Assembly: GCA_002269645.1 (NCBI GenBank)
Contig: NIVC01001517.1
Location: 1-64,000 of the forward strand
Length of the DNA: 64,000 nucleotides
DNA from: Macrostomum lignano
Lineage: Eukaryota
Reading direction: 5' to 3'
In this document: piece by piece, positions 21,449 to 61,963 of the stretch
How the letters are laid out: the number at the start of each line of letters is the position of its first letter
Numbering within the stretch: the first letter of the stretch is position 1
Notes under the pieces: generated by a model
Told to the model about the DNA's origin: nothing
Databases searched by the model: none
What the model saw: the letters and a program-made list of their open reading frames with translations, nothing else
Program-made: the position numbers and the translations under genes

Positions 21449-21481
<33 letters not shown>

Positions 21482-29112: not shown

Positions 29113-32100
29113 ATGAGCATCAGCCTAGAGCATCTACGGCTGCTGTCGGCCTGCGAAATGGGAGACGTCCAAGAGGCACGTCGGCTACTGCTGGCGGGGG
29201 TTTCGCCCGAATGCTGCGAGGCCGACACCAGAGAGACTCCCGTCTACGTAGCTGCCAGGTGAGAACATCCCATTCTTATGCATTTCTGGGCTAAACAGAG
29301 GAGCAAAAACTGAATCGGAGATTTGCTCATCATCCGCGCCGAGTCGTACTGCCCACAGCCGATGCAGGAGGTGCTATTGCTAACGCTGCAGGCCCCCTAC
29401 CGGCGGGGACAGGCGCGCACTCAGCTTTTCATCAACTGCCTGCTAGCTGACGCCGGCGCCCCGGATTCGGCTGGCGGCGTGGCGTTCATTCGCGGCCTGG
29501 CCTTGAAGCGCGCCCTGAGACGCTGACAGCGTATTCTGTTGTTGTTGTTATGCTTTAACAATAATCCTTTTAACCATCTTTTTCCTTAGAAAAAAGCCTT
29601 CGAGAGCTTCAGATAGCTTGAATGTCAAATTTCAAAGTCTAGAAGCTGGGAGCTATATTCCCATATAGATTTTTTTTGGTTTCGCTCCCAGCTGGTTTCT
29701 AATCTGCTGTTCTGTGATAAGATTAAGATTGCAGTCGGCTCTGGGCTTTACTGGTGTCCTGCAAGGCTGGCTAAATACTATAGGGCTGGGAAACCAGCGG
29801 TTTGCTTATTTCCAACAACACAACAAAATACGCAATCAGATCTTCTAAAAACAACGTCTGCAGCAGAACCTCCTGCATCGTCTGCAGAGAGTACCACGAT
29901 ATCACGCGCAGCGATCGCGTGACATCGCGTGTTGCGTTGTTGCTCTGCCGTTACTCTGATAATTTTTGTAGCCAGGGTCTTTGGATTCTAGAAGAAGATA
30001 ACAAAATTGCCAACGTAGCCTTTAAAATAGAGAACTCGCGGCGACCCGCGAAAGCGTTTCGAGGTCGAATCGATTTTTTAACTGTCTTTAATTTTCATAA
30101 GTAGTTAGCGGTATCAGGGTACGAGTAGTTAAGATAAATAAAATTGGCAAAAAATTCGTTGAAAACGATTTTAAAACATCGATGCAGAGAAGGACACGCA
30201 AGAGTCGTCGACTTGCTGGCCCGTTTTGGAGCTGACATCGATCACACGGAGGTGGACGGCTTCAGTCCGCTTTACATGGCCGCTCAGAATGACCACTGCG
30301 CAGCTGCCGAGCGGCTCCTGGTGGCCCAGGCGGACGTGAACCTGCCGCAGCAAAACGGCGGCACCCCACTGCTCATCGCAACTCAGCAGGGCCACGGCGG
30401 CATGGTCCGGCGACTCATTCAGGCCAAAGCCGACGTAAATTGCGGTAACGTCAATGGCACAACGCCGCTGTACATTGCCTCTCAGTACGGAAACGCAGGC
30501 CTCATCCAGCGGCTTTTGGACGCTGGCGCCGCGCCCGATCAGCCAGAAACCGACGGCACCGCGCCTCTGTGGGTCGCGGCTCAGAACGGACACTTCGAAG
30601 CGGTCGAGCGACTTGTGCAGGCCGGCTGCGAGCTGGATCCGCGCCGCCTCGAGACCCAGTCGACACCGCTGTTCATCGCAGCTGAGAACAACAACCTGGA
30701 CATTGTGGAGCTGCTGATCACGGCGGGAGCAAACACGGAACTGGCTGACTATCACAACCAGACGCCGCTGTACACGGCGGCATGGAGTGGCTATTTGTCC
30801 GTTGTTGAACGCCTGATCGAAGCTGGAGCCGCTGTCGATGTTGCGAGATCTGACGACGGCACAACCGCGCTGTTTCGCGCGGCGATTCGAGACCATGCGG
30901 CACTCGTTAAACGTCTGGCCGCCGCCGGGGCCAACGTCAACCACCCGGCAAGGAACGGTCACACCGCCCTGGTTGCCGTCTCTCTAAAAGGTGACGCAAA
31001 GATGGCGGCTCTGCTGCTACAGCTGGGCGCCGACGCAACTGTGGCGTGCGGAAACGAAAATCCGCCACTGACGCCGCTTCGGGCGGCAGTCGAGTTCAAT
31101 CGAGTGGCCGTGGTTCGAGTGCTGCTAGACGACGCTTTTGCCAAAGGGCGGCGGTTCAACAACTGCGACGAAGCGTTTCGCCGCGACGCTCTGGACTGCA
31201 CCAGACTGTCTCGGCGGAGAGGCTTGAGGGAAATCGCCAGCCAGCTGGGAGCGTTCTGGAACACGCGGCCTGTGACTCCGGGGCAGCAACAGAGTCAAAT
31301 TTTGACGGTAGAGAGCAGGTGAAAATAGGAGCCTCTGAAATGTTTATATAACTTTTCCTTTTGGTGTTTCTCAGAAAAAAATGAAATAGACATTTAATGG
31401 GTTTGATTTGGGTCAGCTAAATGTCATATTTTTGGTCGCATCCATACACTAGAGAGCACATTAGGACACTCAGAGAGTAAAACATTTCTTAGAACACCTT
31501 ATAACCAATTTTTACCAACTATTTCAGTAACATCACACAGTCAAGAGCGGCTGAACTCCGAGGACCTCAAAGCCTTCACGAAGCGTTCAACGCTGCCGGT
31601 TTCACCAGCGATCGGGCGGCCTTCCAGTGCGCCATGTCGGACGTGCTCGAGGAGGTGATCCGCGGCCACAGGAACACCAGAGAAGTGAACCTTGTGGGCA
31701 GCTACAGCGAGGGCTGGGGCAACAGCCTGGTTTCGCTGAACGGTCGCACGGACCCAGACTCAGATCTGGACATAACAGAGTTCTCGCACAGGAGACTGTT
31801 CCACATTCGGGGCAGGTGTCGCTGCACTGAGCCCCAGGTGGAAGATGTCCTGGACTACGACAGGGGCCATGTGCTCTACGAAGGAGCCAGTAAGTTTGTT
31901 GTGTTCGGTCTTCGCTGCAAAAATAAAGTCGCACTAAAAAGTTCCGAAGATATGCAATAAAATGTTGATCGTTACCTGCAGGCTCCAACCCGTCCCTGCC
32001 GGACAGAGGCTCCGATCTCAGGCCCGCCATGGACCTGGTGCCAGCGTTCGCTTGCTGCTCCTACCCGGATATTGCCGTTCTGCATCAGCAGGACACTTAC

Positions 32101-33423
32101 CTGCCAAAGCTGCTGTTAGCCGAACTGCGAGCGGAGCTGTCGCGGCCTCGCTCCTGCCACCTGATCCGCGCCTCGGCTCCCGGTTTCGAGGCCAAGCAGA
32201 TGCGGGTAAGCACGACCTTCTTTGAGAAACGGTTCATGCGCAGTCTCACCGCAGTCCAGGGACAGCTGTTCCTGACACTCAAGTTCCTCATCAAGCGGGT
32301 CATTGGCAAGGAGCTGAATGTACACGGACTCAAGTCCTATCACGCAAAGACGCTCACGTTCCGCATGGTGACTAGCATGGAGCCAAGACTGTGGCAGCCG
32401 GAGAACCTCAGGGAGCTGGTCTGTACCGCTCTTGAGGATTTGCGCCACTGCTTGACCACCGCTCCGCCTGGCGAGTGCATGCCGCACTACTTCATGCAGG
32501 ACGCCCCGCTCTACCTGCGGCGGGGCAGCTCAGCCAAGGCCGAGGTGATCGCCGCTCTGGACAAGGTGAAGAGCAACTTGGCAATGTACTTGTCCAGTCT
32601 GGCGTCACAACTGCAGCCACTGACGGATGCTCAGGCCAGCTTCCGGCTGCATCCGTTCACGTTGCTACCGATCTACCTGGTGCTGCCTTGGCCAGACGAA
32701 GGAGAGCTGCAGTACCACCACCTGTACGCTGTTGTTCGCAAGCTCGTGCTCGATCTGGGAGCGCCAAAAACTCCGAGGACTCAGGCCGAATTGCAGGAGA
32801 TGTACCGCCTGGCACAGCGACTGCCTTATTGCGCGCTCACCGCCCGCACCTGCCTACTCGCGCTGGCGCTGCTCCGAATGTCGCGTCCGTCAGAGGCAGC
32901 TCAGCAGCTGCGGCTCAGCCTGGGCTTCGAGAGGCGTCATCAGCGACCACTGCTGCGCAGCCTGCCGGTGGGCCTGGCCGCCGGGCAGGACGACGGCGGC
33001 CGCGGCAACATCCGCCGCCTGCTGGAGACGACAGACTCGGCATGGCGGTTCTGCTTCTACTACGAGTCTCTGCCGGGCCCCAGCTTCCACTACCTGCTGC
33101 CGAGTCCTAGCGCCTACGCTAGCTTCCCCTGCATCATGGCCAGCTACGAGAACTTCTTCTACGTAAACTTCGAGGCTCTGGCCAGATTGCTGATGTGCCA
33201 GCTGGCTCCGGACCTGCTGACTACCGCTGAGACGGACAGCTGGTTCCGGGAGCTGCAGACCGGCGACCCGGACTGGCTGGAGGTGGCCGTGCTCGCCCAG
33301 CACAGCCGCCGGCCTGAGCAGCTGAGGTGGGCGCTCAGCTGGCTGAGCAGTGCGCGGCCGGAAAGCCTCGAAATGCTTCGCGATATTCGAGAGAAGATCG
33401 ATCGGCTGCGGGCGCCGGAGTGA
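29113..33423 (+). CDS. Ankyrin-repeat / Mab-21 (cGAS-like receptor) nucleotidyltransferase, ~1026 aa; exons 29113-29258, 30188-31318, 31528-31889, 31982-33423
   Basis: About 10 ankyrin repeats (G-x-T-P-L-x-x-A-A). NTase motif VGSYSEGWG...DSDLD; MDLVPAF; Mab-21 C-lobe RVSTTFFEK...LKFLIK...LKSYHAKTLTF...W.PENL...MPHYFM. GT-AG junctions give an intact 3081-nt frame. Confidence 0.87.
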
Positions 33424-35598: not shown

Positions 35599-38500
35599 AT
35601 GTCCGTTTGGGCCAGCAGTTGGCTTTGCGGAGTGCCTCTGCTGCTGCTCGGCTGCTTCTGCTGCCTGCGGTGGGCCACCGGCTCTGCCGCAGATCCGGCG
35701 GTTCCGGGTCGGTTGGTGAGTTCGGAGCTTACCATGATTGCTGGGCTGGTGATGGAAGGTGTGATCTGATCTACTGACTATACTCGTACAGGAGTCACAA
35801 TGTCCACTTCATGCAAATTTTTGCGTACAAGCTATTGTAGATGCTAGAGTGCCATTATCGACGTTATTACCGATGCTAGAGTGCCATTATCAACGTTATT
35901 ACCGATGCTAGAGTGCCATTATCGACGTTATTGTTGACGCAAGAGTGCCATTATCGACGCTGTTGTTGATGCAAGAGTGCCATTATCAACGTTATTATCG
36001 ATGATAGAGTGCCATTATCAACGTTATTACCGATGCAAGAGTGCCATTATCGACGTTATTTTAGATGCTAGAGTGCCATTATCGACGTTATTGCTGACGC
36101 AAGAGTGCCATTATCGACGCTATTGTTGATGCAAGAGTGCCATTATCAACGCTATTGTTGATGCAAGAGTGCCATTATCAACGCTATTGTTGATGCAAGA
36201 GTGCCATTATCGACGCTATTGTTGATGCAAGAGTGCCATTATCAACGCTATTGTTGATGCAAGAGTGCCATTATCGACGCTACAGAGCTATTATCGACGC
36301 CGGAGAGCCATTATACATGTAGATGCTGGAGAGCCATTATCGATGATAGAGTGCTATTGTCGGCGCTAGAGTATTAATTTTGGCAGAGAAGGTACCAGGC
36401 CAGATGCTAGTAAATTAGCGAAGGTACTTACTTAGAGGTCAGATCCAGGTGCTATGGCGTTATTTCCTCAGGCTTAGATGACAATCTAGGAGGGAAAGCA
36501 AAATATTTTGCAGACATCTCGATATCTTTGACAATCCCGATGCTCAACAGCCAGCCGCTACTTCACCTCGGCGAGCTCGGCACCGGCTCCGATATCTTCC
36601 CCAATGTCTGTCAGCCCGGCCCGCAGCGACATCGAGTGCGCCGGAATCTGCGCTTCGAAACTCGGCTGTCGGCACTTCCGGTTCGCAGTCGAGAGCCTGA
36701 GCTGCGCCCTTTACGACGCAGGCAGCGGGGGCGCCGGAGGGACTTCCGAAGTGGCGGCTTTTGAAGCCGACGGTGAGAAGCAAATCTCAGTGCGACACTT
36801 ATCCAAGGACTACTAAAGTAGAAGGACGCGACACTCGCAATCAATAGAAAATGTTTTGAAGGCCACCTTTCGCCGAAAAATGCACTACGGAGATAGGAAA
36901 GCTTCATTTTTTCAGCACAAAAATATTTATTCCGTTAGATAGAAGGCCGACCCAATGCTCATCATTTAATATGCTCTGCCTTTCTTACAGCTCTATAATT
37001 GATATTACGGCAATAGATCTTTGATATCAATAGAGCTATAAGAAAGGTACAGCATATCAAATTATGAACACTGGGTCTGCCTTCTATCGAACGCAATAAC
37101 AAATGACATTTTCCATAGACTGCGAGTGTCGCGTCCTGTATATACATGCTTTAGTTGTCCTTGCACTTATCACTGGGATCCCAGTTGCTACAATAAAGCC
37201 AGAGCCACAGCTTTGACAATGCTCAAAGTGCGACCCTAAGTGCTCGTAATTGTGGGACCTTGACTAAAGTTGATGTCAAATCGAGACCCTGGAGTGAAAG
37301 CCAAAACGGTAGCTTCAAACGCTTCAACCTTGATAAGATGTCATTTGAGATGGCACTGCTTGAGGTCGAGACTTAGGGCCAAAAGGTACAAGACGTTTTG
37401 GGCATTCAAATTCCCGATTCTAATCGAGAATGTTGGGGGTCACTGAGAATTCAACCCGCGCGATTACCCCACAGCAACCAACTGCCCCTACATGGCAACA
37501 CTCGGCGACCGCAGCTTCTGCACCTTCCAAGAGCGAAACAGCGCCTCTGTGAGCTTCGAGAGAACCTGGACAGAGTACGAGGCCGGCTTTGGGGACGGCA
37601 GCAACTTCTGGATCGGTGAGTGGCGAAGCTTTTGTCTACCTATGTATCAGTATTGTAGGATCAAGGACCACTAGTAGATACTACTTAAGTAGGAGGATTT
37701 TGGTAACTTTTATTAAAGCCCTTTGTAGTCTAGTGGTTAGGAGGGTTATAGCCTAGAGACTAGAGCGTCGGACTCACGACTTGAAGGTCGGGGGTTCGAT
37801 TCCCGATCCCTCAGAAACAATATGTGTCCTTGAGCAAGACACTTAACTCTGCATTGCTTTAGTTCACCCAGCTGTGAAATGGGTGCCAGCATTAGCTGGG
37901 GTAATTGAAGGTGTGTGTGGCGACCCCCCAGTCCTTGGACTGAACAGCCGTACGCAGCCTTCAGATGCGAAATAACTGCGGCTGAGCTGTCGGTTGCACA
38001 TCTGGCATGATTGGGGCAAGTGTAATCAATTATTATTATCAGTAGTAGTATTATTAAGACCTTAGATATTTAGTATATTGTGATAAAGACCCTTGACTTT
38101 TATATCCTAAATGTCATTGCCGAAGGCTCACCCATTCCGTATCAACTTTCCGTACCAAAAATTTGACATTCAGTCGTACCCGTGTCAATCAGGCCTCCAG
38201 CGCATTCACGAGCTCACAGCCTCCACGCCGAGAACCCTCCGGATCCGTTTTCTGCTGTACAACAACTCCGAGTACTTCAACGAGTACAGCAGCTTCACGG
38301 TGGGCAATTCGACAACAAAGTACCAGATGAACTATGCCGCGTTTCTGCCCAACCAGTCAAACTTGGCGAGCGACTGCCTGGCGGTGCACAATGGAATGAA
38401 GTTCTCCACCAAGGACCAGGACAATGACGCTGCGCAGGCAGACTTCTGCGCAGTCGCATACGGAAATGCGGGCTTCTGGTTCAACTACTGCCTCACGTGC

Positions 38501-38619
38501 AACCCGAACGGTGGTACGCGCCCAGCGGAGACGTCTACAGCCCCAAGTACGCCTACTGGAAATGCGTCGAGAATAACTACACTGCGGTTCGCTCCATCAG
38601 CATGATGCTGCAAGTCTGA
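35599..38619 (+). CDS. Secreted PAN/apple + fibrinogen-related-domain protein; exons ~35599-35710, 36551-36772, 37475-37616, 38192-38619; apparent 1-nt deletion at ~38510
   Basis: Signal peptide MSVWASSWLCGVPLLLLGCFCC. PAN-like SDIECAGICASKLGCRHFRF...SCALY. FReD FCTFQER...SFERTWTEYEAGFGDGSNFWIG|LQRIHELT...NGMKFSTKDQDND...GFWFNYCLTCNPNG, continued in the shifted frame as WYAPSGDVYSPKYAYW...SISMMLQV*. The exon-1 donor is uncertain. Confidence 0.82.
35840..36345. repeat. 32-bp minisatellite (GCAAGAGTGCCATTATCGACGCTATTGTTGAT)n in intron 1
   Basis: Visible degenerate array. Confidence 0.92.
37723..38040 (+). mobile_element. SINE family 1 copy g, in the PAN-FReD intron
   Basis: tRNA head ...GTCGGACTCACGACTTGAAGGTCGGGGGTTCGATTCCC, CORE-like block and tail. 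Confidence 0.85.
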
Positions 38620-38699: not shown

Positions 38700-41600
38700 C
38701 ACACTTGAGAATATTGTTTTGTAGCTATTTGTTTAAATCGGTAGGTTTATATGAGCTTTATTTAGTTCTGTAGGTGGTCAATTATTGTTTTTAATCGGTA
38801 CTACGAAGTCCTATGTGTCTCAATTTTGAAAAAGACCTTATATAAATAAGTTTGCTTCCAAAGTTATTTATTTATGTGTCAATCTCGTGTGAAAGATTTC
38901 TCGACCTCATCACCAATTAGTATCTACTTTTACAAACTTCAATTTATTTCGACTGGACTAAAAACAAAGTTAAATTTGAGAAGGTTTAGTTGACTCTAGC
39001 AAGGTCAGATAGCCCCTCGACTCGACGTACTCTCGCCGCTTTCGTCGCTACTCGTAGGCGCCGGCCCGGACGCGTTACAGGTGGCCCCTCCGCTTGTGGA
39101 ACCGTGGCCGAGCGGTCGAATCTGACTGTCGGTCCGCCGCAAGACGTCGGCGAGGACGCAAATAAGCTCCAACCAACCGAGTCGGTCCAGTAACCCTCGC
39201 AGTCCCGTGTACGTCATACTTATGGGAGCTTAACCAAAACCCTCTGGGTATAAATAAAGTCTTGCCATAACTCACAAATCACAAAAGCTGTAACTTTATC
39301 GTTAACAGCGGGGGACAACCCTGTATTTGGATTTGGATTTGGATTTGGATTTGGATTTGATGCACAGCGAGCGTCCAAGAAGAAAAAATGAAAAACTTCC
39401 TTTTATTACCCAAATTTCGTTTTTCGTGGGCGGGACTTTAAGACTGTAGATCGGACTTTATAGTCGTAGGAGACTCACAAACCTAGCTTCGTAGAGTCGT
39501 TGGGAGTACTCAGAACTGGAACTTTAGAGTTGCTAAGAGGGTACTCGTTGTCGTAAAGCCGCTGGGGGGTATGTAGAGTCGTTGAGAGAAATTCTCGGTG
39601 TTTTAAGGTCGTCAAGAAGTCGGAGCTCGAACAACAAGCTCAGGTTTAAACTTCGAAATAACGGACAGACTAGCTGCCGAACGACTGTTTATGACCCTTC
39701 AAGCTCGAAGGGTTTGAGTGGCGTAGCCACCGGGGGCCGTCGTGGTTCGACATCAGCTGTATCGGCCCGGAGTCCGTCAGCTACTCCAGGTCGTCCGTCA
39801 CCGTCAACGGGTCCAGCCGCAGGTCTTTGCTCGCGTTGGCGCTGAAGAACGGTGGCGCGACGTCGACGAGCAAGCAGGTGAGCTGTTAGCACAAGAGCAG
39901 TTGGTCGGCGAACCTCAATAGCTGAGCTGACAGGGACCTCTGACGCCGGCCCAACACGCTCTCGTAGTCGACGGCGTCGTCGCGTTCTCAGCCGTAGAGC
40001 AGTGGCAGGTCCTCCGAGAACGGTGCCTACGGGTGGTTCGACTTCGGGTCGACGGACGGGTCGAGGTGTCGCATCAGCGTCAAGAGGTCGGCGACTTTCA
40101 TCCGAGCCCGGGGCGCTTCACAGACCGAGTGCGCGCTGGTGACCTGGTCCGGGCCGGCCTAGACCAGGTCGTCGACGTCCATGCCGTCGGGCCTCGAGCG
40201 CAGGCACATGTCCGTCAACTAGGACCCGACGTGGGGCCGGCTCAAGTAGGTCAAGCGCATCCAAGAGAGGAGCGCTTGGTCGAGACCGCCGAAAAGTCGC
40301 CGGACGAGTCGGGGCCGGACCGGCGGTAGGCCGTCGAGCCCGTCCGTCCCGTTGGCAAACTTGTCCAACCGGTGCTTGTACTGCAAGTCCAACCTTAAAG
40401 GCGACTGTTACAGGAGGCCGACTTCTTTAAGCGCTCGAAGTTACTCTAGGCGCAAGACGTCTTGGTCGACGCGAGAGTCTTCCTCCAGTGAAACTCGCTG
40501 TTAAGGGACGTTCAAACGCCGTAAAAGTTCTAATTAAAACTACGTGACCCCGTTCAAGGACGAGTGAGAGTGCAGAGTTCCTACATACGCGACTGAAGAA
40601 ACAGGAGTCCGTCACGTCGTAACCTAAATCGGTGTGGTCGGTTTTCCGGCCCAAATCAAATCCAGTCCAAATCAAATCTAACACAAATCAAATCCAGTCC
40701 AAATCAAAATACTTGCCCTACTCTTATGACGGTCTTCCGTTGCGAGCTTTCACTTTTCACTGAATTTTTTAATCGTCGACGAAAGATTTCACGTTTTAAA
40801 TCCTTCGTCCCTATGCTCGTCCTAAGACAGAAAAGCCCAACTTACACACGCTATTCGATTATGAATAACGCTAGTCTTGGCTCCACTGAGTGCCGTCGTC
40901 CTAAGTTCGTCAGGGACTACAGTCCGCTCGTCTAGACGACGTCGTCTTCGCGCATTCGGAGCGACAGAGAGTGTAGGAGTGACTTCAAAAGTTAGCTTGC
41001 AAGTGACGGGCGTAATGCGTCTACCATCAAGTGGGTAGCGTACTCGTAAACAAGTCCACGTTACGGAGCTTACAGACGCAGGACAAGACAGAGACCCTCG
41101 TACCGAAACTCGAAGACGCTCAGACGCCGTCGGCGGACGAACTGTCGCAGTCAGTCCGGCTTGGTCTAGTCGACGGTGTCCTCTAGCTCGTCGTCGAAGC
41201 CTGAGACGCGGTTAAGTCGGCGGAACCTCGATTGCCCTTGAGGCTCCGAAACTCGGCTCAAGTCGCGGTCCCATTACAAGAGTTAGACCACGCTGGCTAA
41301 GTACGGACGCAGAGACACGTTGCGAGCGAACAGCTAACACAGGACACTCTGTCGCAACTGGCGCGACGACGTTAACTGTCTATTTCTTCACTTCACAAGA
41401 CAGTCAACGTTACGAAATCTGATGTTCGACGTTTGTTTCCGAGATTCAAAAGAACCTTATTTAGGTCCTTTGGAAGTTCCTAACAAGACGATGAACATAG
41501 TGTCTTATTTATTAACGTACGTTGCCAATCACTAAATGGTATCATTATACGGTAGCAGTTTAAAGGGAAGCTAAAGGCGTTCATACAGGAGTTAACCGTC

Positions 41601-43334
41601 CATGAAGAGTGTCAGTCCTAGGCTGGAGTCCAAAAACAATTCGGTTAGTCGGTGACGACGGAAGAGAGGTCGTCGACCAACCAGACTTTGGAGACGAGGT
41701 CCAAGTAGGAAGCTGAGACTTCAGAGCAAGAAGCAAAGGTATCATCCTCCAAGTAGAAGATTGCAAAGCTTAGCCTGTCGTAGGTCACGGCCGAGCAGAA
41801 GACCACGAAGGCCAACGCGGAGAGGGTCACGGCCGAGCAGAAGACCACGAAGGCCAACGCGGAGAGGGTCACCGCCGAGTAGAAGGTCGTCGTCAAAAAG
41901 ATTAAGCAAAAGGTCGACGTTTAGCCGATTAAGGAGTCCGGCTCCGCGTAGGCCGTCGCCCAGGTCGCGGTAGAGAAAAGAAAGCACCAAGAGGACGAAA
42001 GCGAACGCGTCAGAAAGTAATGGGTCCGCTGAGTCCAACTCGAATCGGCGGCTAGCTTAAAGGAACAAAGCTTATCAAACTAGGAAGAGGCTAAGCTTGA
42101 ACATCGAATCGTCGAGCCGCGTGTACAAGAGTGACCCTGGCGGCTCGTCGAATTGTCTGCTCGGACGGCTCAGAAGCTCAGGGAGCTACCACGGGACGGT
42201 CTACAACTGTAGCAGGGCGACGTAGTGCCACGCGAGCAAGAACGGGAGCAAGTCGTTCATCCGGTGAAACTTCAGGCCTAGCGGCTAAGCCTGTGAGTGG
42301 CTGTGGCCGAACAAGTCTCCGTCGTCGAAGACGCAGCCTACGTTGTCATCTAACAGCGACGAGGTGCGCCCGTCCCCGAGGCCCTTGACGAGTCGAGCTG
42401 GCAGGTCGACCGGGTGCGTGGCCTACTTCATCAAGTACATCGCGACGGTGCCCGAACTCGACGAGACAGCCATTTTATCAACGTCTTGCATCACTGGTCG
42501 CTAGAACTTGGCGTGCAGGTGCTACTTCGGCAGCGACAGGGACCTCTACTTTCACATCGGCGACTCGAGAAGCGAGAGGGGCAAGCTCGTTTACATTCTG
42601 TCGAGTCGGGACTAAAGGTCCGCTCGAGAACTTCGTTTGAACTCGACTTCCGACCCCAGTAACGTTTCTTACATGCCTAGCCCTACCGAGTCGCCGGCGT
42701 GCTCAAGAACGTGCCGTAGCAGTCGTTGCAGGTCAGGCGGGTCCGACAGGTCCAGGCCGTTCCCTTTCAGCGCTGTTAGCGCTTTAAGTCTGCGTCTCAG
42801 TTCGTCTTTGACTGTCTGACCCTACGGAGACAGCGCCTGCTGGTTCCGCTTACTGGGGCTCAGACCGCTGTCTTTGACCTACGACCAGAAGCCTGGCTGA
42901 CAGGTTCTGTCGTCCAAGAAACCGCTATACGAGAGCAGTCGTCGAGGCATGTCGACCGTGAGGTCGGCCACGCCAGCGACTAGACACCTGAGGTTGACAT
43001 AGTCAGCGAGCGGCAGGAGGTGGAACTAGAGCGGCCCGAGCAGGCAGAAATCAGCTCGTCTCCGCTCGACGCGAGGGCGCGGTTTCACGTAGTCTAAGCG
43101 CGTCGGGTGCCCGTGGTAGAACCGCCAGGCCAGTCGTGCCCCCGTCACTTAATGCATTCTCTGCATAAGTTAAGGATAAACGTTATAGAACAGTCCTATG
43201 AGCTATCGAGAATCCTCTAATTAACTATTGTACTTAAAGGGCGACGTGCCACCTTGTTTGAACTTCGCGTGTCACAGCACCGAGTAAGACCAACAAAACC
43301 TGTCCATCGGCAACTACGACCGAACGACAAACTA
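38700..43334. other. Block of sequence complemented in place (not reverse-complemented); left edge approximate (38690-38760), right edge 43332-43337
   Basis: Coding sequence, GT-AG introns and AATAAA are recovered only by reading the printed bases right-to-left without complementing. The frame joins ...DGTRRL at 43335 to IKQQASINGY.... The block is rich in GTC/GAC/CG where the flanks are rich in CAG/CTG/GC. Confidence 0.93.
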
Positions 43335-44801
43335 GAGGCGGCGGGTCCCATCTGTGATGTTGGATTTGTGGATGCTAACAACGGCTTTGTAGTCGTACAT
43401 CTGGCCAGCAGCCTCCCTTAGGTAAACCTTGACGGTACCTGGCTTGCCCAGAATGACATTCAGCGGGTGGCTACTTGGGTTTATGCTGTAGTGGAACATC
43501 TCGTCCAGGGCCCCTGAAAAGAACTTCGGCATTCGATGAAACTCGGCCAGGGTGAGGGGCCTGGCCAGCAGCTGCCACTGGCGCAGTTCCTCCACGGGGA
43601 AGTGCGTGAGAATGAGGTTCTCCGGATCGGTGAGGAAGTAGAACTCGTTGCAACCGTAAATCAGCCGTCCCTCCGACTTCCTCGAGTCCTCCACGTTGCC
43701 CTGGTCGTCCAGTTTGGAATAGTTGCCGGTGTCGAATTCGGTGAGGATCTCCGCGCCCCACAGCGGATCGACGAGGCGCCACTCGCCCTCGACGTAGCAA
43801 GCGGTCCAGTTGCCGCCAGACCTCCGGGCCTCCATGCCGCTCTCGAAGCCCGCGCCTTTCTTGTAGCCGAATATCTTTTTGGATGGCACATTGGTCAGCC
43901 TGTGCATGTAGTTTTCAGGTAGTATACAGTATTGGTATCTCATAGAGTTTTTGCTTTAAGGTAATGCTAGTCTCTTTAACAGACCAGCTCATATCTTATT
44001 TGTTATTTTGCTTTTTATCCCAAATTTTAAACACTAAACTTGAGTTTTCAAGAATGGCTTTACTGAGTCCTAATTTCAAAGTAAAACTCGCAGAGAAACG
44101 CATTTTTAGGATGTGTTTCTGTTCTTGTGCTTTAGATTGACAATAATTCTAAGTAGGTTTTCAGTCATATGTGCATACCTAAATAGGTTTCCACATGGCC
44201 AAGTGGGGATATAAAGAAAAAAATTATATATATTTGATAATCAAAGCCAAAAAGTGAGCATAACTTTTTATCTTCATGCTGATAATTAACCTTACCCGAT
44301 CAACCAATCGAAAATCTCATCACTGTCGTCGGTTTGCCGCATCCGCCTGACCCGGGTGTAGAACTCAGACTCAACCTCCGCCTCGGCCAGCTCGTCCACG
44401 GGCAGGCAGCAGACGAAGCAGAAGGCCGCCCTCACTGAGTCCAGGCCGCAGCTGCTCCGCTCGAACAGCCGCACGGCGAATTCCGCGTCCGACTCGAGCG
44501 GCTCCGGCCGCAGCGACTTCACAAATTCGTCCTTCTCGGCGAACTTGGCCGCGTCGAAGATGTCCGACTTGAGCCGACGCGATGGGAACGGACCGACATC
44601 CGTGGCGTCTGGGTCTTTGGGCTCCTCGCCCAGAGTGCGCTGCAGGTGGGCGAGCACCGTGGGAGTTGGGTAAAACCCGGACGCGATCTTCTCGGCCAGG
44701 TTGTCCTCGTCCAGCAGGTAGGAGGCCAAGTCAATTTCCCCATCTTCCGGCCGGTAGGCGCGGTAATACTCCAGATCTGCGAGACTCGGTGGAAGGGACA
44801 T
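38988..44801 (-). CDS. KY/hillarin-like transglutaminase-fold protein fused to plastin/fimbrin-type CH1-CH4 actin-binding domains, ~1430 aa; exons 44801-44296, 43899-41539, 41367-40893, 40506-39721, 39154-38988 (bases below ~43334 must be read reversed, uncomplemented)
   Basis: KY-like: IFGYKKGAGF, WTACYVEGEWRLVDPLWG, NEFYFLTDPENLILTHFP...WQLL. Plastin-like: WLNKNLRSDPDC...DDGILLC...DTIDKR...ENITLALNSAQSLG; LMRWVNYHLRNAG...ENFSEDVRDSEAY; GNSNLNVMFVANLF; REERTYANWMNSAGV; LENCDYAVELGRQLGFSLVGI; IVEWTN...LLDLID; GAKVFASPVD...MLIAAFAALM. One 1-nt deletion at ~39135. Confidence 0.88.
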
Positions 44802-45299
44802 TGCTGAATCCCAAACACGTAAGCAGCTCTACAAGTAAAAATTTCTTCTCTTTGATTTTTTGGAGAGCTCTTGAATGCAGCACTGCTGACCTGTTATCTA
44901 ATCTTAATTACGCTAAAAATAAGGCACTAACATTCTCACGGATTTACTGCTGCTCTTCTCACCGCCCGTACGAGCGCAGCAGCGCGCAAGTGCACAAAAC
45001 AACCGCCTTTGACAGGCTGCGATATGAAGATACGAAGCTTACAGAGGCCTGGAGCGTACGCTAGTCTACTGTTGGCTCGTTAATGTACGTTCGTACTTTT
45101 AATTTAACAAGCCCGCAAGCAAGTGAGAGCGCACAGACTTTGAGTCTCGTACAAGCGGCAGACAATCGAAATAAAATGGACAAAAGCGGGTATATAGCAA
45201 AACCGCAACCCTGAAGGAGGCCGTAATGTCAAGTGGTCTGGCGCAGTCGCATTAATTTCGAGCCGTCTGCTGATGCAAAATTATAACGGCTTTGAGGGA

Positions 45300-45465: not shown

Positions 45466-45961
45466 TGACAATGTCTCTTTAAGTGCGCCAGGGTGCACAC
45501 AGCCCCTTTGTCTCCCACTAAAAAATCGCAATCCATTCTTTTATCTGTAAAATTTTACCTACTTCTTGCAAGAATATCCTGGTGCGAGAAACAAACTTTA
45601 TTTGTTTATTAAGCAAAGAAAGTAGTAAATTTACTAAGAAACAAACTGTCATATTTACAAAGCAAATCTTTCTTTCAATTCAACTTAGAACTGAAGTGCG
45701 CAGGTTTAAGCTGAAACAAGTGGACAAGATTTGTGCATACGTCTTTGTATATTTTTCAGTGAGCAGTACAAGCAATATCAGTGCAGAGCTGAATGGAGCG
45801 AAAGATCTATCAGACTTACGAGTACTAAAGCAGTTTATAACTGGGAAGAATAAATACAAAAATGCAACGGAGACAAAAGTTTGCAGAAATTCATCCAACT
45901 ACATGTCCAAGCAACATTAGATGTAGAAAACTGAAGGTAAACTTATGAACAAAGCTTAGCG

Positions 45962-46420
45962 TTGAGTAGGTTTCCAATCATCTACCCACCTGTGAGTAGG
46001 TTTCTAATCATCTACCCACCTGTGAGTAGGTTTCTAATCATCTACCCACCTGTGAGTAGGTTTCCAATCATCTACCCACCTGTGAGTATGTTTCCAATCA
46101 TCTACCCACCTGTGAGTAGGTTTCCAATCATCTACCCACCTGTGAGTAGGTTTCCAATCATCTACCCACCTGTGAGTAGGTTTCCAATCATCTATCCACC
46201 TGTGAGTAGGTTTCCAATCATCTTCCCACCTGTGAGTAGGTTTCCAATCATCAACCCACCTGTACGAGTCATGTAAGTAGGTTTCCAATCATCTACCCAC
46301 CTGTGAGTAGGTTTCCAATCATCTACCCACCTGTGAGTAGGTTTCCAATCATCTACCCACCTGTGAGTAGGTTTCCAATCATCTACCCACCTGTGAGTAG
46401 GTTTCCAATCATCTACCCAC
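45962..46420. repeat. 30-bp minisatellite (GTGAGTAGGTTTCCAATCATCTACCCACCT)n
   Basis: Visible; lies just past the GT32 stop codon. Confidence 0.95.
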
Positions 46421-46446
46421 TAATCAACTCATCTAATCACCAGGGC

Positions 46447-48978
46447 TCAATGCAGCAGCACCCCCGGCAGCAGCTGAGCTACCTTAACCGCAGCCGTCCT
46501 GTCTTTATGATATCCCAGATGCAGGAAGTCGTGCTTGGCAAAGGCGGCCACAGACTGGTTGACAAAGCTGTCAGGCCGCTGCAAGAACCTGTCGCAGTGC
46601 TGCAGCTGCAGGGAGTTGAGCAGCAGGCGGCGAAGCAGCGGCACTCGGCACTGCCAGCGAAGTTTGGCGAGGCCCGGCGCCTCAGCGTCGAACACAGGCT
46701 GGAACAGCTCCGGCGGCGCCACCAAGATGCTTGAGGCAGCTGCGGTCAAGAACTTCCTAGCGATCGAGTCCAGGACCACTGGGCCCGTGGCGAACACCGC
46801 TCGATGTCGCTGCCAGCGGCGCCGCCAGAGACGCAGCGGGCCGCCGTGCTCAGCCCACAGCCTGGCCGGCTGGGTCAGGAAGAAGTGGCGCCAGAAACTG
46901 CGGCACGGCGCCGAGTAAATCAGCGCGTTGCTGATCAGGCTGGGCTGGCCGTACAGGAAGATGGCGTGCGGCTGCGGGTGGCGCGGGTCACCTGACTCAC
47001 CGACTGGGTCACCTGACTCACCGACTAGGTCACCTGACTCACCGACTGGGTCACCTGACTCACTGACTGGGTCACCTGACTCACTGACTGGGTCACCTGA
47101 CTCACTGACTGGGTCACCTGATTCACTGACTGGGTCACCTGACTCACTGACTGGGTCACCTGACTCACTGACTGGGTCACCTGATTCACTGACTGGGTCG
47201 CCCTGACTCACTGACTGGGTCGCCTGACTCACTGACTGGTCACCTGACTCACTGACTGGGTCACCTGACTCACTGACTGGGTCACCTGACTCACTGACTG
47301 GGTCACCTGACTCACTGACTGGGTCACCTGACTCACTAACTGGGTCACCTGACTCACTGACTGGGTCACCTGATTCACTGACTGGGTCACCCTGACTCAC
47401 TGACTGGGTCACCTGACTCACTGACTGGTCACCTGACTCACTGACTGGGTCACCTGACTCACTGACTGGGTCACCTGACTCACTGACTGGTCACCTGACT
47501 CACTGACTGGGTCACCTGACTCACTGACTGGGTCACCTGACTCACTAACTGGGTCACCTGACTCACTGACTGGGTCACCTGACTCACTAACTGGATCACC
47601 TGACTCACTGACTGGGTCACCTGACTCACTGACTGGGTCACCTGACTCACTGACTGGGTCACCTGATTCACTGACTGGGTCACCTGACACACTGACTGGG
47701 TCACCTGACTCACTGACTGGGTCACCTTGACTCACTGACTGGGTCACCTGATTCACTGACTGGGTCACCTGACACACTGACTGGGTCACCTGATTCACTG
47801 ACTGGGTCACCTGACACACTGACTGGGTCACCTGACTCACTGACTGAGTGGCTGGATTACCCATCTGTCATACAGAATGGACTGGCTGTGTCAGTGATCT
47901 GTCCTACAGAACAGCCGGCTGTGTCAGTGATCTGTCATTCAGAACGGACTGGCTGTGTCAGTGAACTGTCATACAGAATGGCCGGCTGTGTCAGTGAACT
48001 GTCATACAGAATGGCCGGCTGTGTCAGTGAACTGTCATACAGAATGGCTGACTGTGTCAGTGAACTGTCATACAGAATGGCCGGCTGTGTCAGTGAACTG
48101 TCATACAGAATGGCTGACTGTGTCAGTGAACTGTCATACAGAATGGCTGGCTGTGTCAGTGAACTGTCATACAGAATGGCCGGCTGTGTCAGTGAACTGT
48201 CATACAGAATGGCCGGCTGTGTCAGTGAACTGTCATACAGAATGGCTGACTGTGTCAGTGAACTGTCATACAGAATGGCTGACTGTGTCAGTGAACTGTC
48301 ATACAGAATGGCCGGCTGTGTCAGTGAACTGTCATACAGAATGGCTGACTGTGTCAGTGAACTGTCATACAGAATGGCCGGCTGTGTCAGTGATCTGTCA
48401 TACAGAATGGCTGGCTGTGTCAGTAACCAACAGTCAGCACAGCTCACCCGAGGCTCCTCAGTGAAGACAATGTCATGCTGGGCCATGATGGACTGTGCAG
48501 GCCTGAGTGACATGACATCAAGGTCGGCATACAGGCCTCCGAAATGGTTGAGAATGAGCAGCCGGGCCAGGTCTGAGCGCTCCACCCCGTGCGCCAGCTG
48601 TTCGTGAAAGAAGCGGCGCATCCGTGGCCCGAACTGAGCCATCAGGAAGCTGTCAATGCCCGCGTCAGTCCAGAAGTGCAGCTCGAAGTTCGGGTAGTCG
48701 CGGGCCCAGGAGCGGATGTAGTTGGCGAATGCGACTGGCACAGAGTCAGTCTGGTACATCAGGTGGATCCTACGGACCGGCAGTTCCTGATCTCGCCCGG
48801 TGCAATGAGGCGAGGCGTTCCACCTGGCTGCGAACTCTTTGTAGGGAAAGCCGTCACCTGAGAGCAGCTGAGAGGCCGGCCACATGATAAACATGAGCAG
48901 CAGCAGCACTGACATGATGATGGGGTGGCGCAGCCGGAAACTGTGCCGGCACCTGAGCAGGTGCCTCATTAGCCGCAT
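46447..48978 (-). CDS. GT32-family (DXD, Gly_transf_sug) type II membrane glycosyltransferase; exons 48978-48448 and 46971-46447
   Basis: N-terminal TM PIIMSVLLLLMFIMWPASQLL; RRIHLMYQT; YIRSWARDYPNFELHFWTD; SDLARLLILNHFGGLYADLDV. Exon 2 has SLISNALIYSAP and ATGPVVL. Phase-0 intron GTGAGC...CCGCAG. Confidence 0.85.
46985..47850. repeat. 21-bp minisatellite (CACTGACTGGGTCACCTGACT)n in the GT32 intron
   Basis: Visible. Confidence 0.96.
47875..48425. repeat. 33-bp minisatellite (GTGTCAGTGAACTGTCATACAGAATGGCCGGCT)n in the GT32 intron
   Basis: Visible. Confidence 0.96.
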
Positions 48979-49360: not shown

Positions 49361-52354
49361 GGGAGGTTGTGTATGTATGTATGTAATATATCCTGGGTTT
49401 TTCTAGCATCAGAGTTGCAATGCCAGAACTTATATACCAGAGCTTCAGCTGTTGCTTAAGGAGACCAAGTTATTACTACTCATATACATGTATAGGTTAA
49501 ATCAATATCATAAAGCTTTAATTGAAAGTTATATCCTTATATGAAAAGTAGGCCCTATATAGGCCTAAAGCTTTAGATCTAGCTCAATAAGTTATATAAA
49601 GACTATTTACTGTTTATATTTATTAATTTGAAGTAACAGCTTTTAGTTTTGAACCAAAAATATTGTTTTTTAATACAAATTCAAATTTTTCAGATTTTAA
49701 CACCATTAATTGCAAAATTATAATTTTTTAAATGCAAATCAAATGCTTAAATAAAAATTCATATTATCATTTATATGGATAAATTCATTTATGAATTTAA
49801 ATCATATTGTATCTTCTAAACATTCTAGAGTTTGAAAATCTTTGATATCTGCCATGCAAAGGAAAATGGTAAAAGTTAACTTATATTAGGGACTTCAGTG
49901 AGGTTTTTAAAACTAAAAATTAGGCCATTTTTTGTACTTCATCATATAGATCCATGCTTTATGAGCATGGTGACATTTCATTTATAAAAATTGGTTGGGT
50001 ATTAAAAAAGTTATGGTACATTTTGTGCTACATTTTTTATGTTGCCTTTTCAAAGTATATTAACTTTACTTCACACTTTACTCCTTTCAATAGTTATAAG
50101 TGTAGAAAGATAGGCCCTTTTTGCCATTTTTACAATTTTGAACGGGATAATTTTGCCTCATTGAAGTCCCTACTTATATTCTGCTCTGATCCCATGTAGC
50201 ATTTGTGTATACATTTTCTTATGCATACTTTTGGACTAACTTATAGAGTTACTCAATGATAGAAACTTGTTGAGCTCAATAATATTAATATATTAGGCCC
50301 TAAACTAAAGCTTTTTTGCATTCCAATTATAAAATTCTTCCTGTCTTTTGTGTCACACCAGTTTAAAACTTAATTAACTAAATAACCAAAGATTGCGAAT
50401 ATACTACCACTAAGAGGTTTACACTGTTTACACATAATAGACATGGTGACCTGGCAGGCCACCCAGGCCTCTAACTAAAGTTAAGAACCCAAGATACGAC
50501 CCTTCGGCCTTCATCAACCCTTGGCCTTGCCTTGCGCCCTTACTACATCTTGCTTAACTAAATTTAATCAATGCATGGTTATTATAGCCAAGATGTTCTT
50601 TGACCTACTACATGTCGTCAAATATGCATGATATCCATCGACATAATCATGGTAAACGGGCGCAACCATAGCGCATATGGCATATGCTTAATGCTGCTGC
50701 ACGTGATACGAATCATCAGAGTCGAGAATCAACGAGAATCTACTGAAGTTGAAAATGTGGTAGTGACAAGTGTGACTGTTGTATTTTTTATTTTGGCGTC
50801 CATTGCATGGCCTTACCTTTTGGAAGTTTTTCGGAAGTTCCCCCATTTATCGGTCTAATCGTGGGATTTTTGTGCCCTTTACTTGTTAAATAAATCATAA
50901 AAGTTTGTTTTACTCTTTCCTATCGATAACCTGGAAACAGCGTTCCAATTCGGTAAGTCCCGCTGTTGGTCCCAGAACCTTGCCCGTGGCCGTTTATATA
51001 TACATGTAAACTCACAGTATACACCACACATAAAAATGTATACTTCTTTTTCTTTTCCCACTTTTCCTTTTGTGTTGCCACTAGTAGTATATACTATAGA
51101 AGGTGGAAACGGAACCAGCAGCGCTGTCCAGTTTTTTGACTAAACCGGTTATTTCGAATAGCCGCTAATAACGCGTTCCACACTGGCAGTTACTAGTTAC
51201 GAACCGGACGAAAATATTTTGGATTTGTTTAAAAGAATTAACTGGGATAACTTGCTGGGATGGCCTTCATGTCAGAGCATTTTGGGTGTGCCCGCGGCCA
51301 TGAAGTGTAAGTAGCAGAATACGATTCGGTCAAAATCGTTGCAAGTGTATACATGTAGATAGTAGTCGAGGTGGTGGAGTTAGCGAAGGTCCCGGAGTGA
51401 GGCAGGTATAGAGCGGGAGTGAGGTGGTCGCGGAGTGAGTTGGGCGCGCGGAGCGAGGGGTTCTCCAGCAGTTCAGTCGTGCTTGCTAAGATTCTGCATC
51501 TTCGTAGAAAATCTCAATCATTTTGCCGGCACTGAAACTTATTCAGTTAGTTAAATATAACCCACTAATTTTGTTCTGTTCGATCACGCAGTATATCTTC
51601 GCCCGCAGTTGAATGTACAAATACGTTGCGGAGATTTTGAAGGCGATTCCTCTCAAATTCAATTCGGAATCGGATCACTGGAGCACCAAGCGATACCATG
51701 CAGACTCCAAGAAGTCAGGCAGCGGCCACCGCAAATATTGGGGTGTTTATTCACAAATCTTCCGTCATAAGTTGTTTGCATCTCCACCAGTTGACTTTTC
51801 CACCAGTTTGAAACTTTTTTCTCTGAGGAGCAGAGGACTCAAAATTGCGTTTATCTGCATGTTGGTGGGGTCTCAGACACACAGTGCCCCAAACTGCTGA
51901 GGTGCCCCCCCCCGTCTAACTTTGGCATTGCATTCCAATCTCCAAATTTGTGGTTTTTGCATTCTTTTGAGTTTGAAATTAGCTTTGCTCTAAGTAGTTG
52001 AAATTATACTCGATTTCTACCGTCGAAGTTTACAATTGTCTCCTCAATATAGTTTCTGAATTCCTTAATTAATTCTATAGATTCTCATTTTTTTCTGCGA
52101 GAGTTTTCTGAAAAAATGTAAGACAATAATTACGACGCAAATTCGTGCTTCAAATTCCGCAGTGGAAACTTTGGCATTTAAAAACTGAAGCAGAATTTAA
52201 TAAATCCATTTTTCTTTGCCATTTCTCACAGAATTGGAATTTCAGCGATTCAAATCCTGAGATATACATGTAAATTGCTTCAGCTTGGAACCTTCCTAGA
52301 CAGAAGCTACTCACAGAAACAGAAGCCAGGGTACAAGAGCTTAAACTCTCAGCC

Positions 52355-54360
52355 ATGAACTTTTCTCTGCTAGTTGCTGCGGCTCTGCTGGCCGCTCTGA
52401 CGGGGTCATCGGCCAATGTTGCCGAGAAGCAGGAGAGAGGCAAGCGGATGGACCACATACTGTGCCAGGCCGGTCACCAGCTAAGTGAAGACTCGGACTT
52501 CATTTGCCAGCCCTGCAGCGCCGGCACCCATAGGGGAATAACCGTGAATTCCAAGTGCCAGAAGTGCCCGCCAGGCTCATACAGCCGCGCCGGGGCCGCC
52601 GCCTGCTCCAAGTGCTGGCCGGGCAGCTTCGCCGCCAGCTCAGGCTCCGCGAGCTGCCAGAAGTGCGCCAAGGGCTCGATGGCCGCCACGGACGGCTTGT
52701 CGAGCTGCACGCCCTGCCCTGCCGGCAGCTTCATCAGCTTCAGCGGCTCCCCAGCCTGCGTGCAGTGTCCCGCCGGCACCTCGAGCAAGGCCGGAGAAGC
52801 GGAGTGCAGCAAGTGCCAGCCGGGCCACTTCTCCCCAGCTGGAGCGGCCGCCTGCAGGCCGTGCCCGGCCGGAAGCTACTCAGCAGCGGGCGCCTCAGCT
52901 TGCACCAGCTGCCCGGCCGGAAGCTTCTCAGCTGCTGGCGCCTCGGCTTGCACCCGCTGTCCGGCCGGCCAGTTCGCCTCATCAGAAGGCAGCAAGCAGT
53001 GCAAGGCCTGCCCTCCGGGCTCCTTCTCTGACACGGCGGGGCGACTGAGTGCCAACAGTGCGATCGGATCTTCGCCCTGGCTACCAAGTCTGGCATGACT
53101 AAATGCGACCTTTGCCCCAACGGCGGCGCCACCTTTGGGGACAACCGCTGCTACAGTGAGCTCCCAGCAGTCCATCCTATTTCTTACCTCAAGCTCATAA
53201 AACCTCGAGAACCCTGAGAATAGCACTAGTGCACCAGTTACTGCTAAACTATCGGGGTTGCTACGAGCGCATATTGCGATCGTGGCCCTTGCGGTTTAGG
53301 CTACTTGGTTTATTATGATTGTTCTTGGTGAATCTAACTAGTTTGATTTTTGGTAGGTTGCTGCCACCAGGTTTTTGGTATTCCCTAATCCTAGTACTTA
53401 GATAATTAAAGACTTAGACCGGAAAACAAAGAATTTATTTACTCGAGAGATATAGTCCAACAAAACAAACTTATTAATATGCAATAGGTACTACAGATAG
53501 TTTATTAAACTGGTGCAAAAATTGATCGGCATCGACTACCGTTATGTACTGCTATGGCATCGACCACCTGTAACAGTTTTACGTACATGAATTCCACAAC
53601 TGCTATTCCCGATCTTACTTTATCATCTCCTCTACGTTAGAAATGCCTTAGACTGGCTCAAAGTCCCAAAATGTGTAACTTCTTCTTCACGAGTCTCAAC
53701 TGCTCGCTACTTAGAACAAAGCCCCAAAATCACGTTCTAATCCCATCATGAATACTTTCCCTGGCTAGAACTACTGACAGTAGCGTAAAAGCATAAATGC
53801 CCTATTATTACAATGTTAAAGAATCCTTTTTTATTTTGTTTCTTTTGATTAGGTAGGCCTATAGATTGAACACAACGGAAGGTCGAAAGTACATTTTTAA
53901 GCCTCTCTAGAACCTCACCCCCGACACCAAAACCGGAATTCCAGGAAAGTTGAACGTCTCCTGTTGGACGAGCTGGCCAGAATGCGAGCGCACAATTGAC
54001 AATGACGTGTACTCCTACGGACAGGCGCTGAACAAGAAGTTCGCCAAGCCTTCGACTCCAGTGCATGAGACGTATTTTCACTACAAATTTGATGCTCCAG
54101 TGCACTTGAGGGGCTACGTTGTCTGGGGCAAGTACGGCTGCTGCTTGAAGAGCCTCACTGATTACGAAATATATGTCATCCATGAGGGGAACCCGATATC
54201 CTGCTTCTATACTGTTGGAAAATATTATGCAGACAAATACTATGCTTCTCATGGCGGCTGCGATGTGGATGAGGTCAAGGATTTAAAAATTATTCCCAAA
54301 AAAGACGACGCAGTCAATAAAATCATCACAGTGGCTGAGGTGGCGTTCTACGTCTATTGA
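52355..54360 (+). CDS. Secreted Cys-rich protein with tandem GCC2/GCC3 (ephrin-receptor-like) repeats and a C-terminal beta-rich, possibly lectin-like domain; exons 52355-53155 and 53945-54360; 1-nt deletion at ~53040
   Basis: Signal peptide MNFSLLVAAALLAALTGSSA. About 10 C-x2-C-P-A-G-S-F/Y-S repeats. The shifted frame continues ATECQQC...KCDLCPNG...RCY into a phase-1 GTGAG...CCAG junction with exon 2 (ending VAEVAFYVY*). Confidence 0.8.

Positions 54361-60246: not shown

Positions 60247-61963
<1,717 letters not shown>

Follow-up and report, generated by a model that had tools for sequence, protein, structure and literature searches.

The locus described here raises the question of whether a single gene of Macrostomum lignano encodes a protein in which a KY-like module is joined to an actin-bundling plastin core. 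It lies in a stretch of 64,000 nucleotides of contig NIVC01001517.1 (assembly GCA_002269645.1, positions 1 to 64,000, forward strand), and this whole stretch is called the window below. We conclude, with a probability of roughly 0.8, that the window holds one copy of a multi-copy M. lignano gene, whose single mRNA would be translated into a cytoplasmic KY-like/plastin-core protein of ~1,430 residues. The gene becomes readable when one block of the window, 38792-43341, is base-complemented in place, and the term "decoded" refers to the sequence after this step.

Gene model and evidence for a single coding sequence

The decoded gene has five exons on the minus strand (44801-38988) in a model that follows the GenBank models of two public copies. 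Its coding exons and the elements belonging to them are as follows:

44963..45016, minus strand: probable 5' untranslated exon, found by tblastn at 100% identity to residues 1-18 of an older UniProt model
44296..44801, minus strand: coding exon 1, with the ATG at 44801, encoding the acidic N-terminus and the start of the KY-like core; read without decoding
41539..43899, minus strand: coding exon 2 (2,361 nucleotides), which completes the transglutaminase-like core and continues through the Ig-like_KY region and the acidic linker into the first calponin-homology domain (CH1), of which it encodes the first half
41783..41885, minus strand: in-frame tandem repeat of 42 nucleotides with the 14-residue unit EDEPxLGEAQPEAP, from Tandem Repeats Finder and protein alignment
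40893..41367, minus strand: coding exon 3, encoding the rest of CH1 and most of CH2; decoded GT...AG borders, alignment to the GenBank models and plastin-3
39721..40506, minus strand: coding exon 4, encoding CH3 flanked by the end of CH2 and the beginning of CH4; decoded, placed by tblastn with the public proteins
38988..39154, minus strand: last coding exon, encoding the C-terminal half of CH4; decoded reading
38844..38849, minus strand: candidate polyadenylation signal AATAAA, the first after the stop in the decoded 3' flank, conserved in both comparison loci (L001 and L002, below)

The start is identical in both GenBank models, and exon 1 ends at the donor GG/GTAAGG (the slash marks the exon end). 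Older UniProt models translate 44963..45016 as their first 18 residues. Exon 4 ends at the consensus donor GCG/GTGAGT (39721/39720). For the beginning of this exon, an acceptor at 40545, which adds 13 residues (CIKINLENAANLQ), was replaced by the one at 40506, the site found in the transcript-based GenBank models.

The junction between the two modules lies inside exon 2. This exon is uninterrupted over 787 codons, of which those at 43899-43342 are seen in the ordinary reading and those at 43341-41539 are readable only after complementing. The KY-like part extends to ~42081, the linker occupies 42080-41670, and the CH core begins at 41669. No stop appears for any block junction placed between 43333 and 43358, and the residues at the block edge, GTRAEIK, are fixed by the paralogues. 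The original prediction had stated that the transition from KY to CH1 lies within the one exon 43899-41539 and requires no splicing guess; the exon is indeed open throughout and is an ordinary open reading frame (ORF) in both comparison loci.

The decoded protein is 97-98% identical to three public M. lignano proteins, A0A1I8HW62 (97%), PAA67832.1 and PAA57614.1, the last two of which share a 90%-identity cluster with the first. PAA67832.1 and PAA57614.1 come from the loci named here L002 and L001, respectively, in assembly GCA_002269645.1, and these served as paralogous comparison loci. Each of them differs by 1-3% from the window, so neither is the window's own locus; an exact look-up for A0A1I8HW62 found no contig on record. 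The junction exon has 802 codons in L002 and 854 in L001, with no stop between the modules in either public locus. Apart from the repeat number and small in-frame differences, the GenBank models align to the decoded protein without gaps.

The two models were predicted with TransDecoder on a genome-guided assembly of RNA-seq data, for which transcription units had been divided at sites of trans-splicing and polyadenylation (PMC5730564). As the pipeline cut the units and yet kept one coding sequence, the joining of the KY and CH regions has transcript support at two paralogous loci, in the form of RNA-seq-based models that span both regions. The assignment of the KY-like and plastin-like parts to one predicted gene, with a single exon at the junction and a single coding sequence, is supported, and the public models agree with the proposed fusion.

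The gene, which the original prediction had called hidden, is not biologically hidden, and its sequence is not undiscovered. The need for decoding stems from the complemented block of 4,550 nucleotides, which is absent from the public paralogous loci, and the fusion sequence is already public as an uncharacterised protein, annotated automatically in UniProt and GenBank as "TGc domain-containing" or "Calponin-homology domain-containing" protein. Its domain architecture is undescribed and appears lineage-restricted. A literature search with the locus tags Mlig024785 and Mlig003158 gave nothing, and no paper joining KY and CH domains in one protein was found.

Domain composition of the predicted protein

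The protein begins with an acidic N-terminus and a KY-like core; Ig-like_KY domains follow, and an acidic linker leads to four CH domains at the C-terminus. The Pfam scan of the whole protein returned nothing besides CH and Ig-like_KY. The latter family (PF23265) matched with 55.7-58.9 bits against a cut-off of 27, in up to three stretches when the N-terminal part was scanned alone. The evidence for a transglutaminase-like core is of an indirect kind. The BLASTP search with the core matched a scallop KY-like protein (E=2e-21), and HMMER matched KY-like proteins of ~1,050 residues, one of them from Ostrea edulis (E=2.8e-35 and 2.5e-33), both carrying PF01841 together with PF23265. When the family profile was compared with the PDB, it matched the transglutaminase-like domain protein 9crn (3.6e-4) and the Chlamydomonas axonemal protein FAP246 (4.4e-15). 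The FAP246 match (PDB 7n6g/7sqc, residues ~565-700) is better than that to 9crn, and FAP246 is a protein of the ciliary central apparatus. This match means that a solved structure of a KY-like core within a cytoskeletal assembly exists.

In the alignment of the catalytic triad, the archaeal homologue reads GVCGEY...NHAWNAV...LVDSTW and the fusion protein reads QTDDSDE...GGNWTAC...LVDPLW. Of the triad, only the Asp remains in the fusion protein and in both mollusc relatives; the catalytic Cys and His have disappeared. Since two residues of the triad are lost, the KY-like module is most likely a non-catalytic scaffold, that is, a pseudoenzyme. The KY/hillarin transglutaminase-like module of the original prediction is retained as a KY-type module, with its Ig-like_KY domains and KY-like relatives, that has lost the catalytic Cys and His.

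The linker contains 38 Asp/Glu among 137 residues. The EDEPxLGEAQPEAP repeat is present in 2.5 copies in the window and in 6.5 copies in L001 (12937-13207). Both the acidic N-terminus and an acidic linker with a duplicated unit of this kind had been predicted, and both were found.

Plastins bundle filaments through two tandem actin-binding domains in one chain, and their EF-hand head gives Ca2+ sensitivity. Pfam finds four CH stretches in the predicted protein (E=3.2e-57), and one continuous alignment joins the C-terminal 533 residues to residues 125-623 of the 630 residues of human plastin-3 (E=3.7e-96). This alignment takes in all of the actin-binding domains ABD1 and ABD2 and none of the regulatory head. 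No EF-hand family was found by Pfam at E≤0.01 anywhere in the protein, in agreement with the predicted absence of EF-hands. Two tandem actin-binding domains of four CH domains in one chain are therefore present, with the end of CH4 hanging on a weak donor or an assembly error, and the N-terminal EF-hand pair of plastins is missing. Because of this missing pair, the predicted fusion protein is not a canonical plastin. Nor is the plastin core, as read from the window copy, securely complete, because the last exon carries a frameshift; the four-CH core had been proposed as complete, and its four domains are confirmed while the integrity of CH4 is not.

The ratio of nonsynonymous to synonymous differences per site (pN/pS) between the window copy and each paralogue is ~0.2 overall and 0-0.33 per module wherever substitutions exist. 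The overall value fits a translated protein constrained along its whole length, and the estimated ratios show purifying selection on every module.

Alternative explanations, the complemented block and the surroundings of the gene

Several points weigh against the expression of an intact ~1,430-residue fusion protein with the proposed role from this copy. The deletion of one nucleotide in the last exon truncates CH4 under consensus splicing, and the copy may be defective. The transcript evidence concerns the two paralogous loci and not the window copy. Pfam was expected to return a transglutaminase-like domain with four CH domains; the CH domains and Ig-like_KY were returned, and Transglut_core (PF01841) gave no match on the fusion protein even at E≤10. 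The AlphaFold2 model of residues 1-454, built on a five-sequence alignment, has a mean predicted local distance difference test score of 45.6 and is too poor to use. Neither actin bundling nor Ca2+ independence nor the scaffold role goes beyond inference, and a literature search found no experiment on this protein. The claim of lineage specificity depends on database content, in which other Macrostomum species appear unrepresented.

In the DNA alignment, the window is without one C in a short C-run at 39138/39137, as compared with both L001 and L002, and a further deletion of 2 nucleotides relative to both loci lies near the normal stop (~39008). Because of the missing C, splicing from the consensus donor (exon end 39721) leads to a last exon reading ERLQNAAWLSV and to a stop at 39121-39119, giving a product of 1387 amino acids in which the C-terminal half of CH4 is lost. 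A weak donor, A/GTTTGG, located 4 nucleotides downstream (exon end 39717), restores the frame and gives 1432 amino acids with the stop at 38990-38988. The ORF of ~1430 amino acids proposed originally is thus obtained with the weak donor and lost with the consensus one. The one-nucleotide deletion would be either a real frameshift in a redundant copy or an assembly or sequencing indel.

If the frameshift is real, this copy may be a decaying or defective paralogue, its 1387-residue product would have a weakened or abolished second actin-binding domain, and the function would reside in other copies. Both deletions and the stop reached from GCG/GTGAGT speak for this explanation, and redundant copies do exist, as the genome of the DV1 line contains large duplicated blocks that are at least 95% identical (PMC5730564). 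Meanwhile, pN/pS remains ~0.2 over the rest of the coding sequence, and the remaining coding indels are in frame (an RGD/R-D difference and differences in repeat units). Several one-nucleotide indels in short base runs of the non-coding flanks are typical of long-read assembly errors, and the frame-restoring donor lies only 4 nucleotides away. Taken together, a defective copy is a possibility to which we give rather less than an even chance.

It is improbable that the locus makes two products, a KY-like protein and a separate EF-hand-less plastin, with the fused coding sequence being a read-through or precursor artefact. Such products would need an internal ATG (Met812 or Met889) and, in the linker, either a promoter or a site at which a spliced leader is added in trans. 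In-frame Met codons are indeed present in the linker, and transcription units of M. lignano are often multi-gene precursors, with 38.8% of genes being trans-spliced (PMC5730564). However, a single uninterrupted exon of 787 codons encodes both the Ig-like domains and the first half of CH1, and the annotation, in spite of being cut at trans-splice and poly(A) signals, still gives one coding sequence at both loci. In addition, the ~137 linker codons are open and in frame in three copies, where all changes in the repeat are multiples of 42 nucleotides.

An assembly chimera of a KY-like gene and a plastin gene is very improbable. A repeat-rich, duplicated genome does ease misassembly (PMC5730564), but the same junction exon occurs in the window and on two different contigs of GCA_002269645.1, as well as in the models of an earlier independent assembly (UniProt A0A1I8HW62, A0A1I8III7 and A0A1I8H0G3).

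The block that has to be decoded spans exactly 4,550 nucleotides (38792-43341), which are base-complemented in place without reversal of their order. Read in the ordinary way, the window is collinear with L001 and L002 in blastn comparisons as far down as 43342, and this collinearity resumes at 38791. For the block 43341-38792, a match to these loci (96.5-99.7% identity) requires the complement of the window. Both boundaries, 43342/43341 and 38792/38791, can be placed to the single base, with 25 of 25 positions matching on each side. The upper edge interrupts a run of codons within exon 2, and the lower edge is reached ~200 nucleotides after the stop codon. Repeats were looked for at the block edges, and none flank them.

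In the raw window, the minus strand has an ORF of 169 codons from the ATG at 44801 and a second one from 43943 to a stop at 43332, after which the translation is full of stops. When the plus strand is read from right to left without complementing, open frames appear at 43355-41538 (606 codons), 41420-40860 (187 codons) and 40575-39580 (332 codons), and these hold the peptides listed in the original prediction, FKFVPPCSGKFMLSI, VRFKIAGHYVLQLFY and SHPDPYI. Introns 2-4 are bounded by CA...TC in the raw window, and all four introns are bounded by GT...AG once decoded.

The block is a data-handling artefact and no biological rearrangement, because the order along the chromosome is kept with the bases alone swapped, whereas an inversion would give the reverse complement in flipped order, and because its edges cut exon 2 and the 3' flank without flanking repeats and the GT...AG borders appear after the complement is undone. 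A genuine rearrangement or strand switch has nothing in its favour except the presence of the block in the window and is close to negligible, given the collinearity with both flanks, the edges in an exon and a 3' flank without repeats, the length of exactly 4,550 nucleotides, and a reading frame and splice signals that are sensible only once the complement is undone. As a matter of data quality, standard gene finders, BLAST and automatic annotation of the window will break or miss the gene.

Other readings were tried and rejected. A block end near the stop codon was suggested by an AATAAA at ~38947 of the raw minus strand; this signal is TTTATT in complemented form, and the block in fact extends to 38792. 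The alignment of the raw plus strand to the public loci was uninformative, as expected. Other long ORFs in the window that open only on complementing or only on reversing are rich in Arg, Ser and Pro or derived from repeats, and are not protein-like. Elsewhere in the window, there is no sign of a second complemented block; apart from the known one, the ordinary reading of 28930-55351 follows L002 collinearly.

The surroundings of the gene contain the following ORFs:

8267-8944, plus strand: DDE transposase fragment, mobile-element remains
10293-10919, plus strand: second fibrinogen C-terminal domain ORF
30144-31322, plus strand: ankyrin-repeat ORF
32029-33423, plus strand: Mab-21_C ORF
38111-38605, plus strand: Fibrinogen_C ORF (E=7e-22), converging on the 3' end of the fusion gene, with its stop ~190 nucleotides from the block edge
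52274-53095, plus strand: ephrin-receptor-like cysteine-rich ORF with six ephrin-receptor-like/TNFR-type repeats (E=6e-30)
56989-59436, minus strand: reverse transcriptase/RNase H ORF of 816 codons, mobile-element remains
63456-63998, minus strand: RNase H/zf-RVT fragment at the window end, mobile-element remains

The neighbouring ORFs (fibrinogen, ankyrin/Mab-21, ephrin-receptor-like, reverse transcriptase and transposase) all read normally. The ORF at 52274-53095 is probably an exon from a gene for a larger secreted or membrane protein. In L002 (21286-25597), ankyrin repeats and the C-terminal domain of Mab-21, a member of the cGAS-like nucleotidyltransferase family, are found in one gene model of 1,026 residues. 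The window also contains long tandem arrays at 18955-21826, 45900-46480, 46450-48600 and 61070-61670. They include (TQTDSDRLRQ)n over ~3 kb, a 30-nucleotide repeat just upstream of the fusion gene, a 33-nucleotide type and a trinucleotide run of ~500 nucleotides, and agree with the high content of tandem repeats reported for the M. lignano genome.

Proposed function, origin and related proteins

In the mechanism proposed for the fusion protein, both actin-binding domains would cross-link F-actin without Ca2+ control, and the KY-like/Ig-like part, serving as a docking module without catalysis, would link these bundles to partner proteins. Ca2+-independent bundling is expected because the EF-hand head is replaced, and a docking role is most likely for the KY-like/Ig-like part because it lacks a catalytic site. 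We regard the combination of Ca2+-independent cross-linking with KY-type docking as about equally likely to be right or wrong. The Ca2+-insensitive cross-linker with a scaffold domain that the original prediction suggested is a reasonable hypothesis.

A study on KY (PMC6078408) ties vertebrate KY to the localisation of filamin C and reports that filamin C is mislocalised in KY deficiency. Loss of KY causes human myofibrillar myopathy, vertebrate KY is associated with filamin C at the Z-disc, and filamin C also belongs to the actin cross-linkers with CH domains. In Drosophila, hillarin accumulates at the cleavage furrow, while C. elegans LTD-1 is distributed in an actin-like pattern (PMC3718969). 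The link between KY and filamin C, the furrow localisation of hillarin and the pattern of LTD-1 fit the docking picture.

Domain fusions often mark cooperating proteins, and a KY-like module welded to a plastin core supports a direct connection between KY and actin cross-linkers. The fusion would also provide a naturally occurring plastin core that lacks the Ca2+ switch. A bolder "Rosetta stone" interpretation, which we hold only tentatively and think rather unlikely, is that KY-type pseudo-transglutaminase modules work physically with CH-domain actin cross-linkers. The KY module would then replace the Ca2+ control of plastin by partner-dependent anchoring, for example, at muscle attachments or dense-body-like structures. 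If true, this interpretation would offer a testable handle on the molecular role of KY, and M. lignano is open to RNA interference and transgenesis (PMC5730564).

The distribution of the architecture was examined in 1.84 billion representative proteins, using residues 251-1450 of a paralogue as the query. The sole other protein with both modules was another M. lignano copy. No other organism in this search combines Ig-like_KY with a plastin core. Ig-like_KY was found in none of the 14 long plastin-core proteins that were checked from the representative search, and those whose source was looked up belong to protists such as Anaeramoeba and a ciliate. Outside the fusion group, the nearest CH core is that of the M. 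lignano EF-hand plastin BOX15_Mlig009179g2 (51% identity), with the listed plastins of other animals at 37-43%. The same genome contains a canonical EF-hand plastin as well as two paralogues, A0A1I8H883 and A0A1I8JCF9, that have the KY part only. Because the CH core is closer to the plastin of its own species than to those of other animals, the simplest reading would be that the fusion arose within the macrostomid lineage, where a plastin duplicate was joined to a KY-like gene.

Compared with known systems, the fusion protein combines features of two families. Like KY and the invertebrate KY-like proteins of Ostrea edulis (LOC125669562) and Mizuhopecten yessoensis (LOC110442821), it has a putative transglutaminase-like core followed by Ig-like_KY (PF23265). 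The HMMER match to the mollusc proteins spans 83% of the KY part, and they share the loss of the catalytic Cys and His; unlike the fusion protein, they are ~1,050 residues long and contain no CH domain, and the identity is 24-32%. The similarity to the M. lignano KY-only proteins A0A1I8H883 and A0A1I8JCF9 (35% identity) runs from the core through the Ig-like region into the beginning of the basic/acidic linker; CH domains are absent from these two proteins, whose C-terminus is an Ala/Glu-rich tail. Drosophila hillarin and C. elegans LTD-1 are likewise transglutaminase-like-domain proteins tied to the cytoskeleton; in them, the module occurs alongside LIM and W180 domains and is not known to be joined to an actin-bundling core.

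On the plastin side, the four tandem CH domains follow the same order as in PLS3 (PDB 7r94), and the identity to the M. lignano plastin BOX15_Mlig009179g2 is 51% over 99% of the CH core. In contrast to plastin/fimbrin, the fusion protein has no EF-hand pair or regulatory head, and its N-terminus is formed by a KY-like module and an acidic linker, together ~910 residues long; the canonical BOX15_Mlig009179g2 carries the EF-hands that the fusion protein lacks. A C-terminal four-CH core behind a long N-terminal extension without EF-hands is also found in "fimbrin-1" of Anaeramoeba ignava (1,094-1,171 amino acids). The N-terminal parts of such long protist plastin-core proteins, however, contain neither Ig-like_KY nor a transglutaminase-like domain, and these proteins are unrelated fusions.

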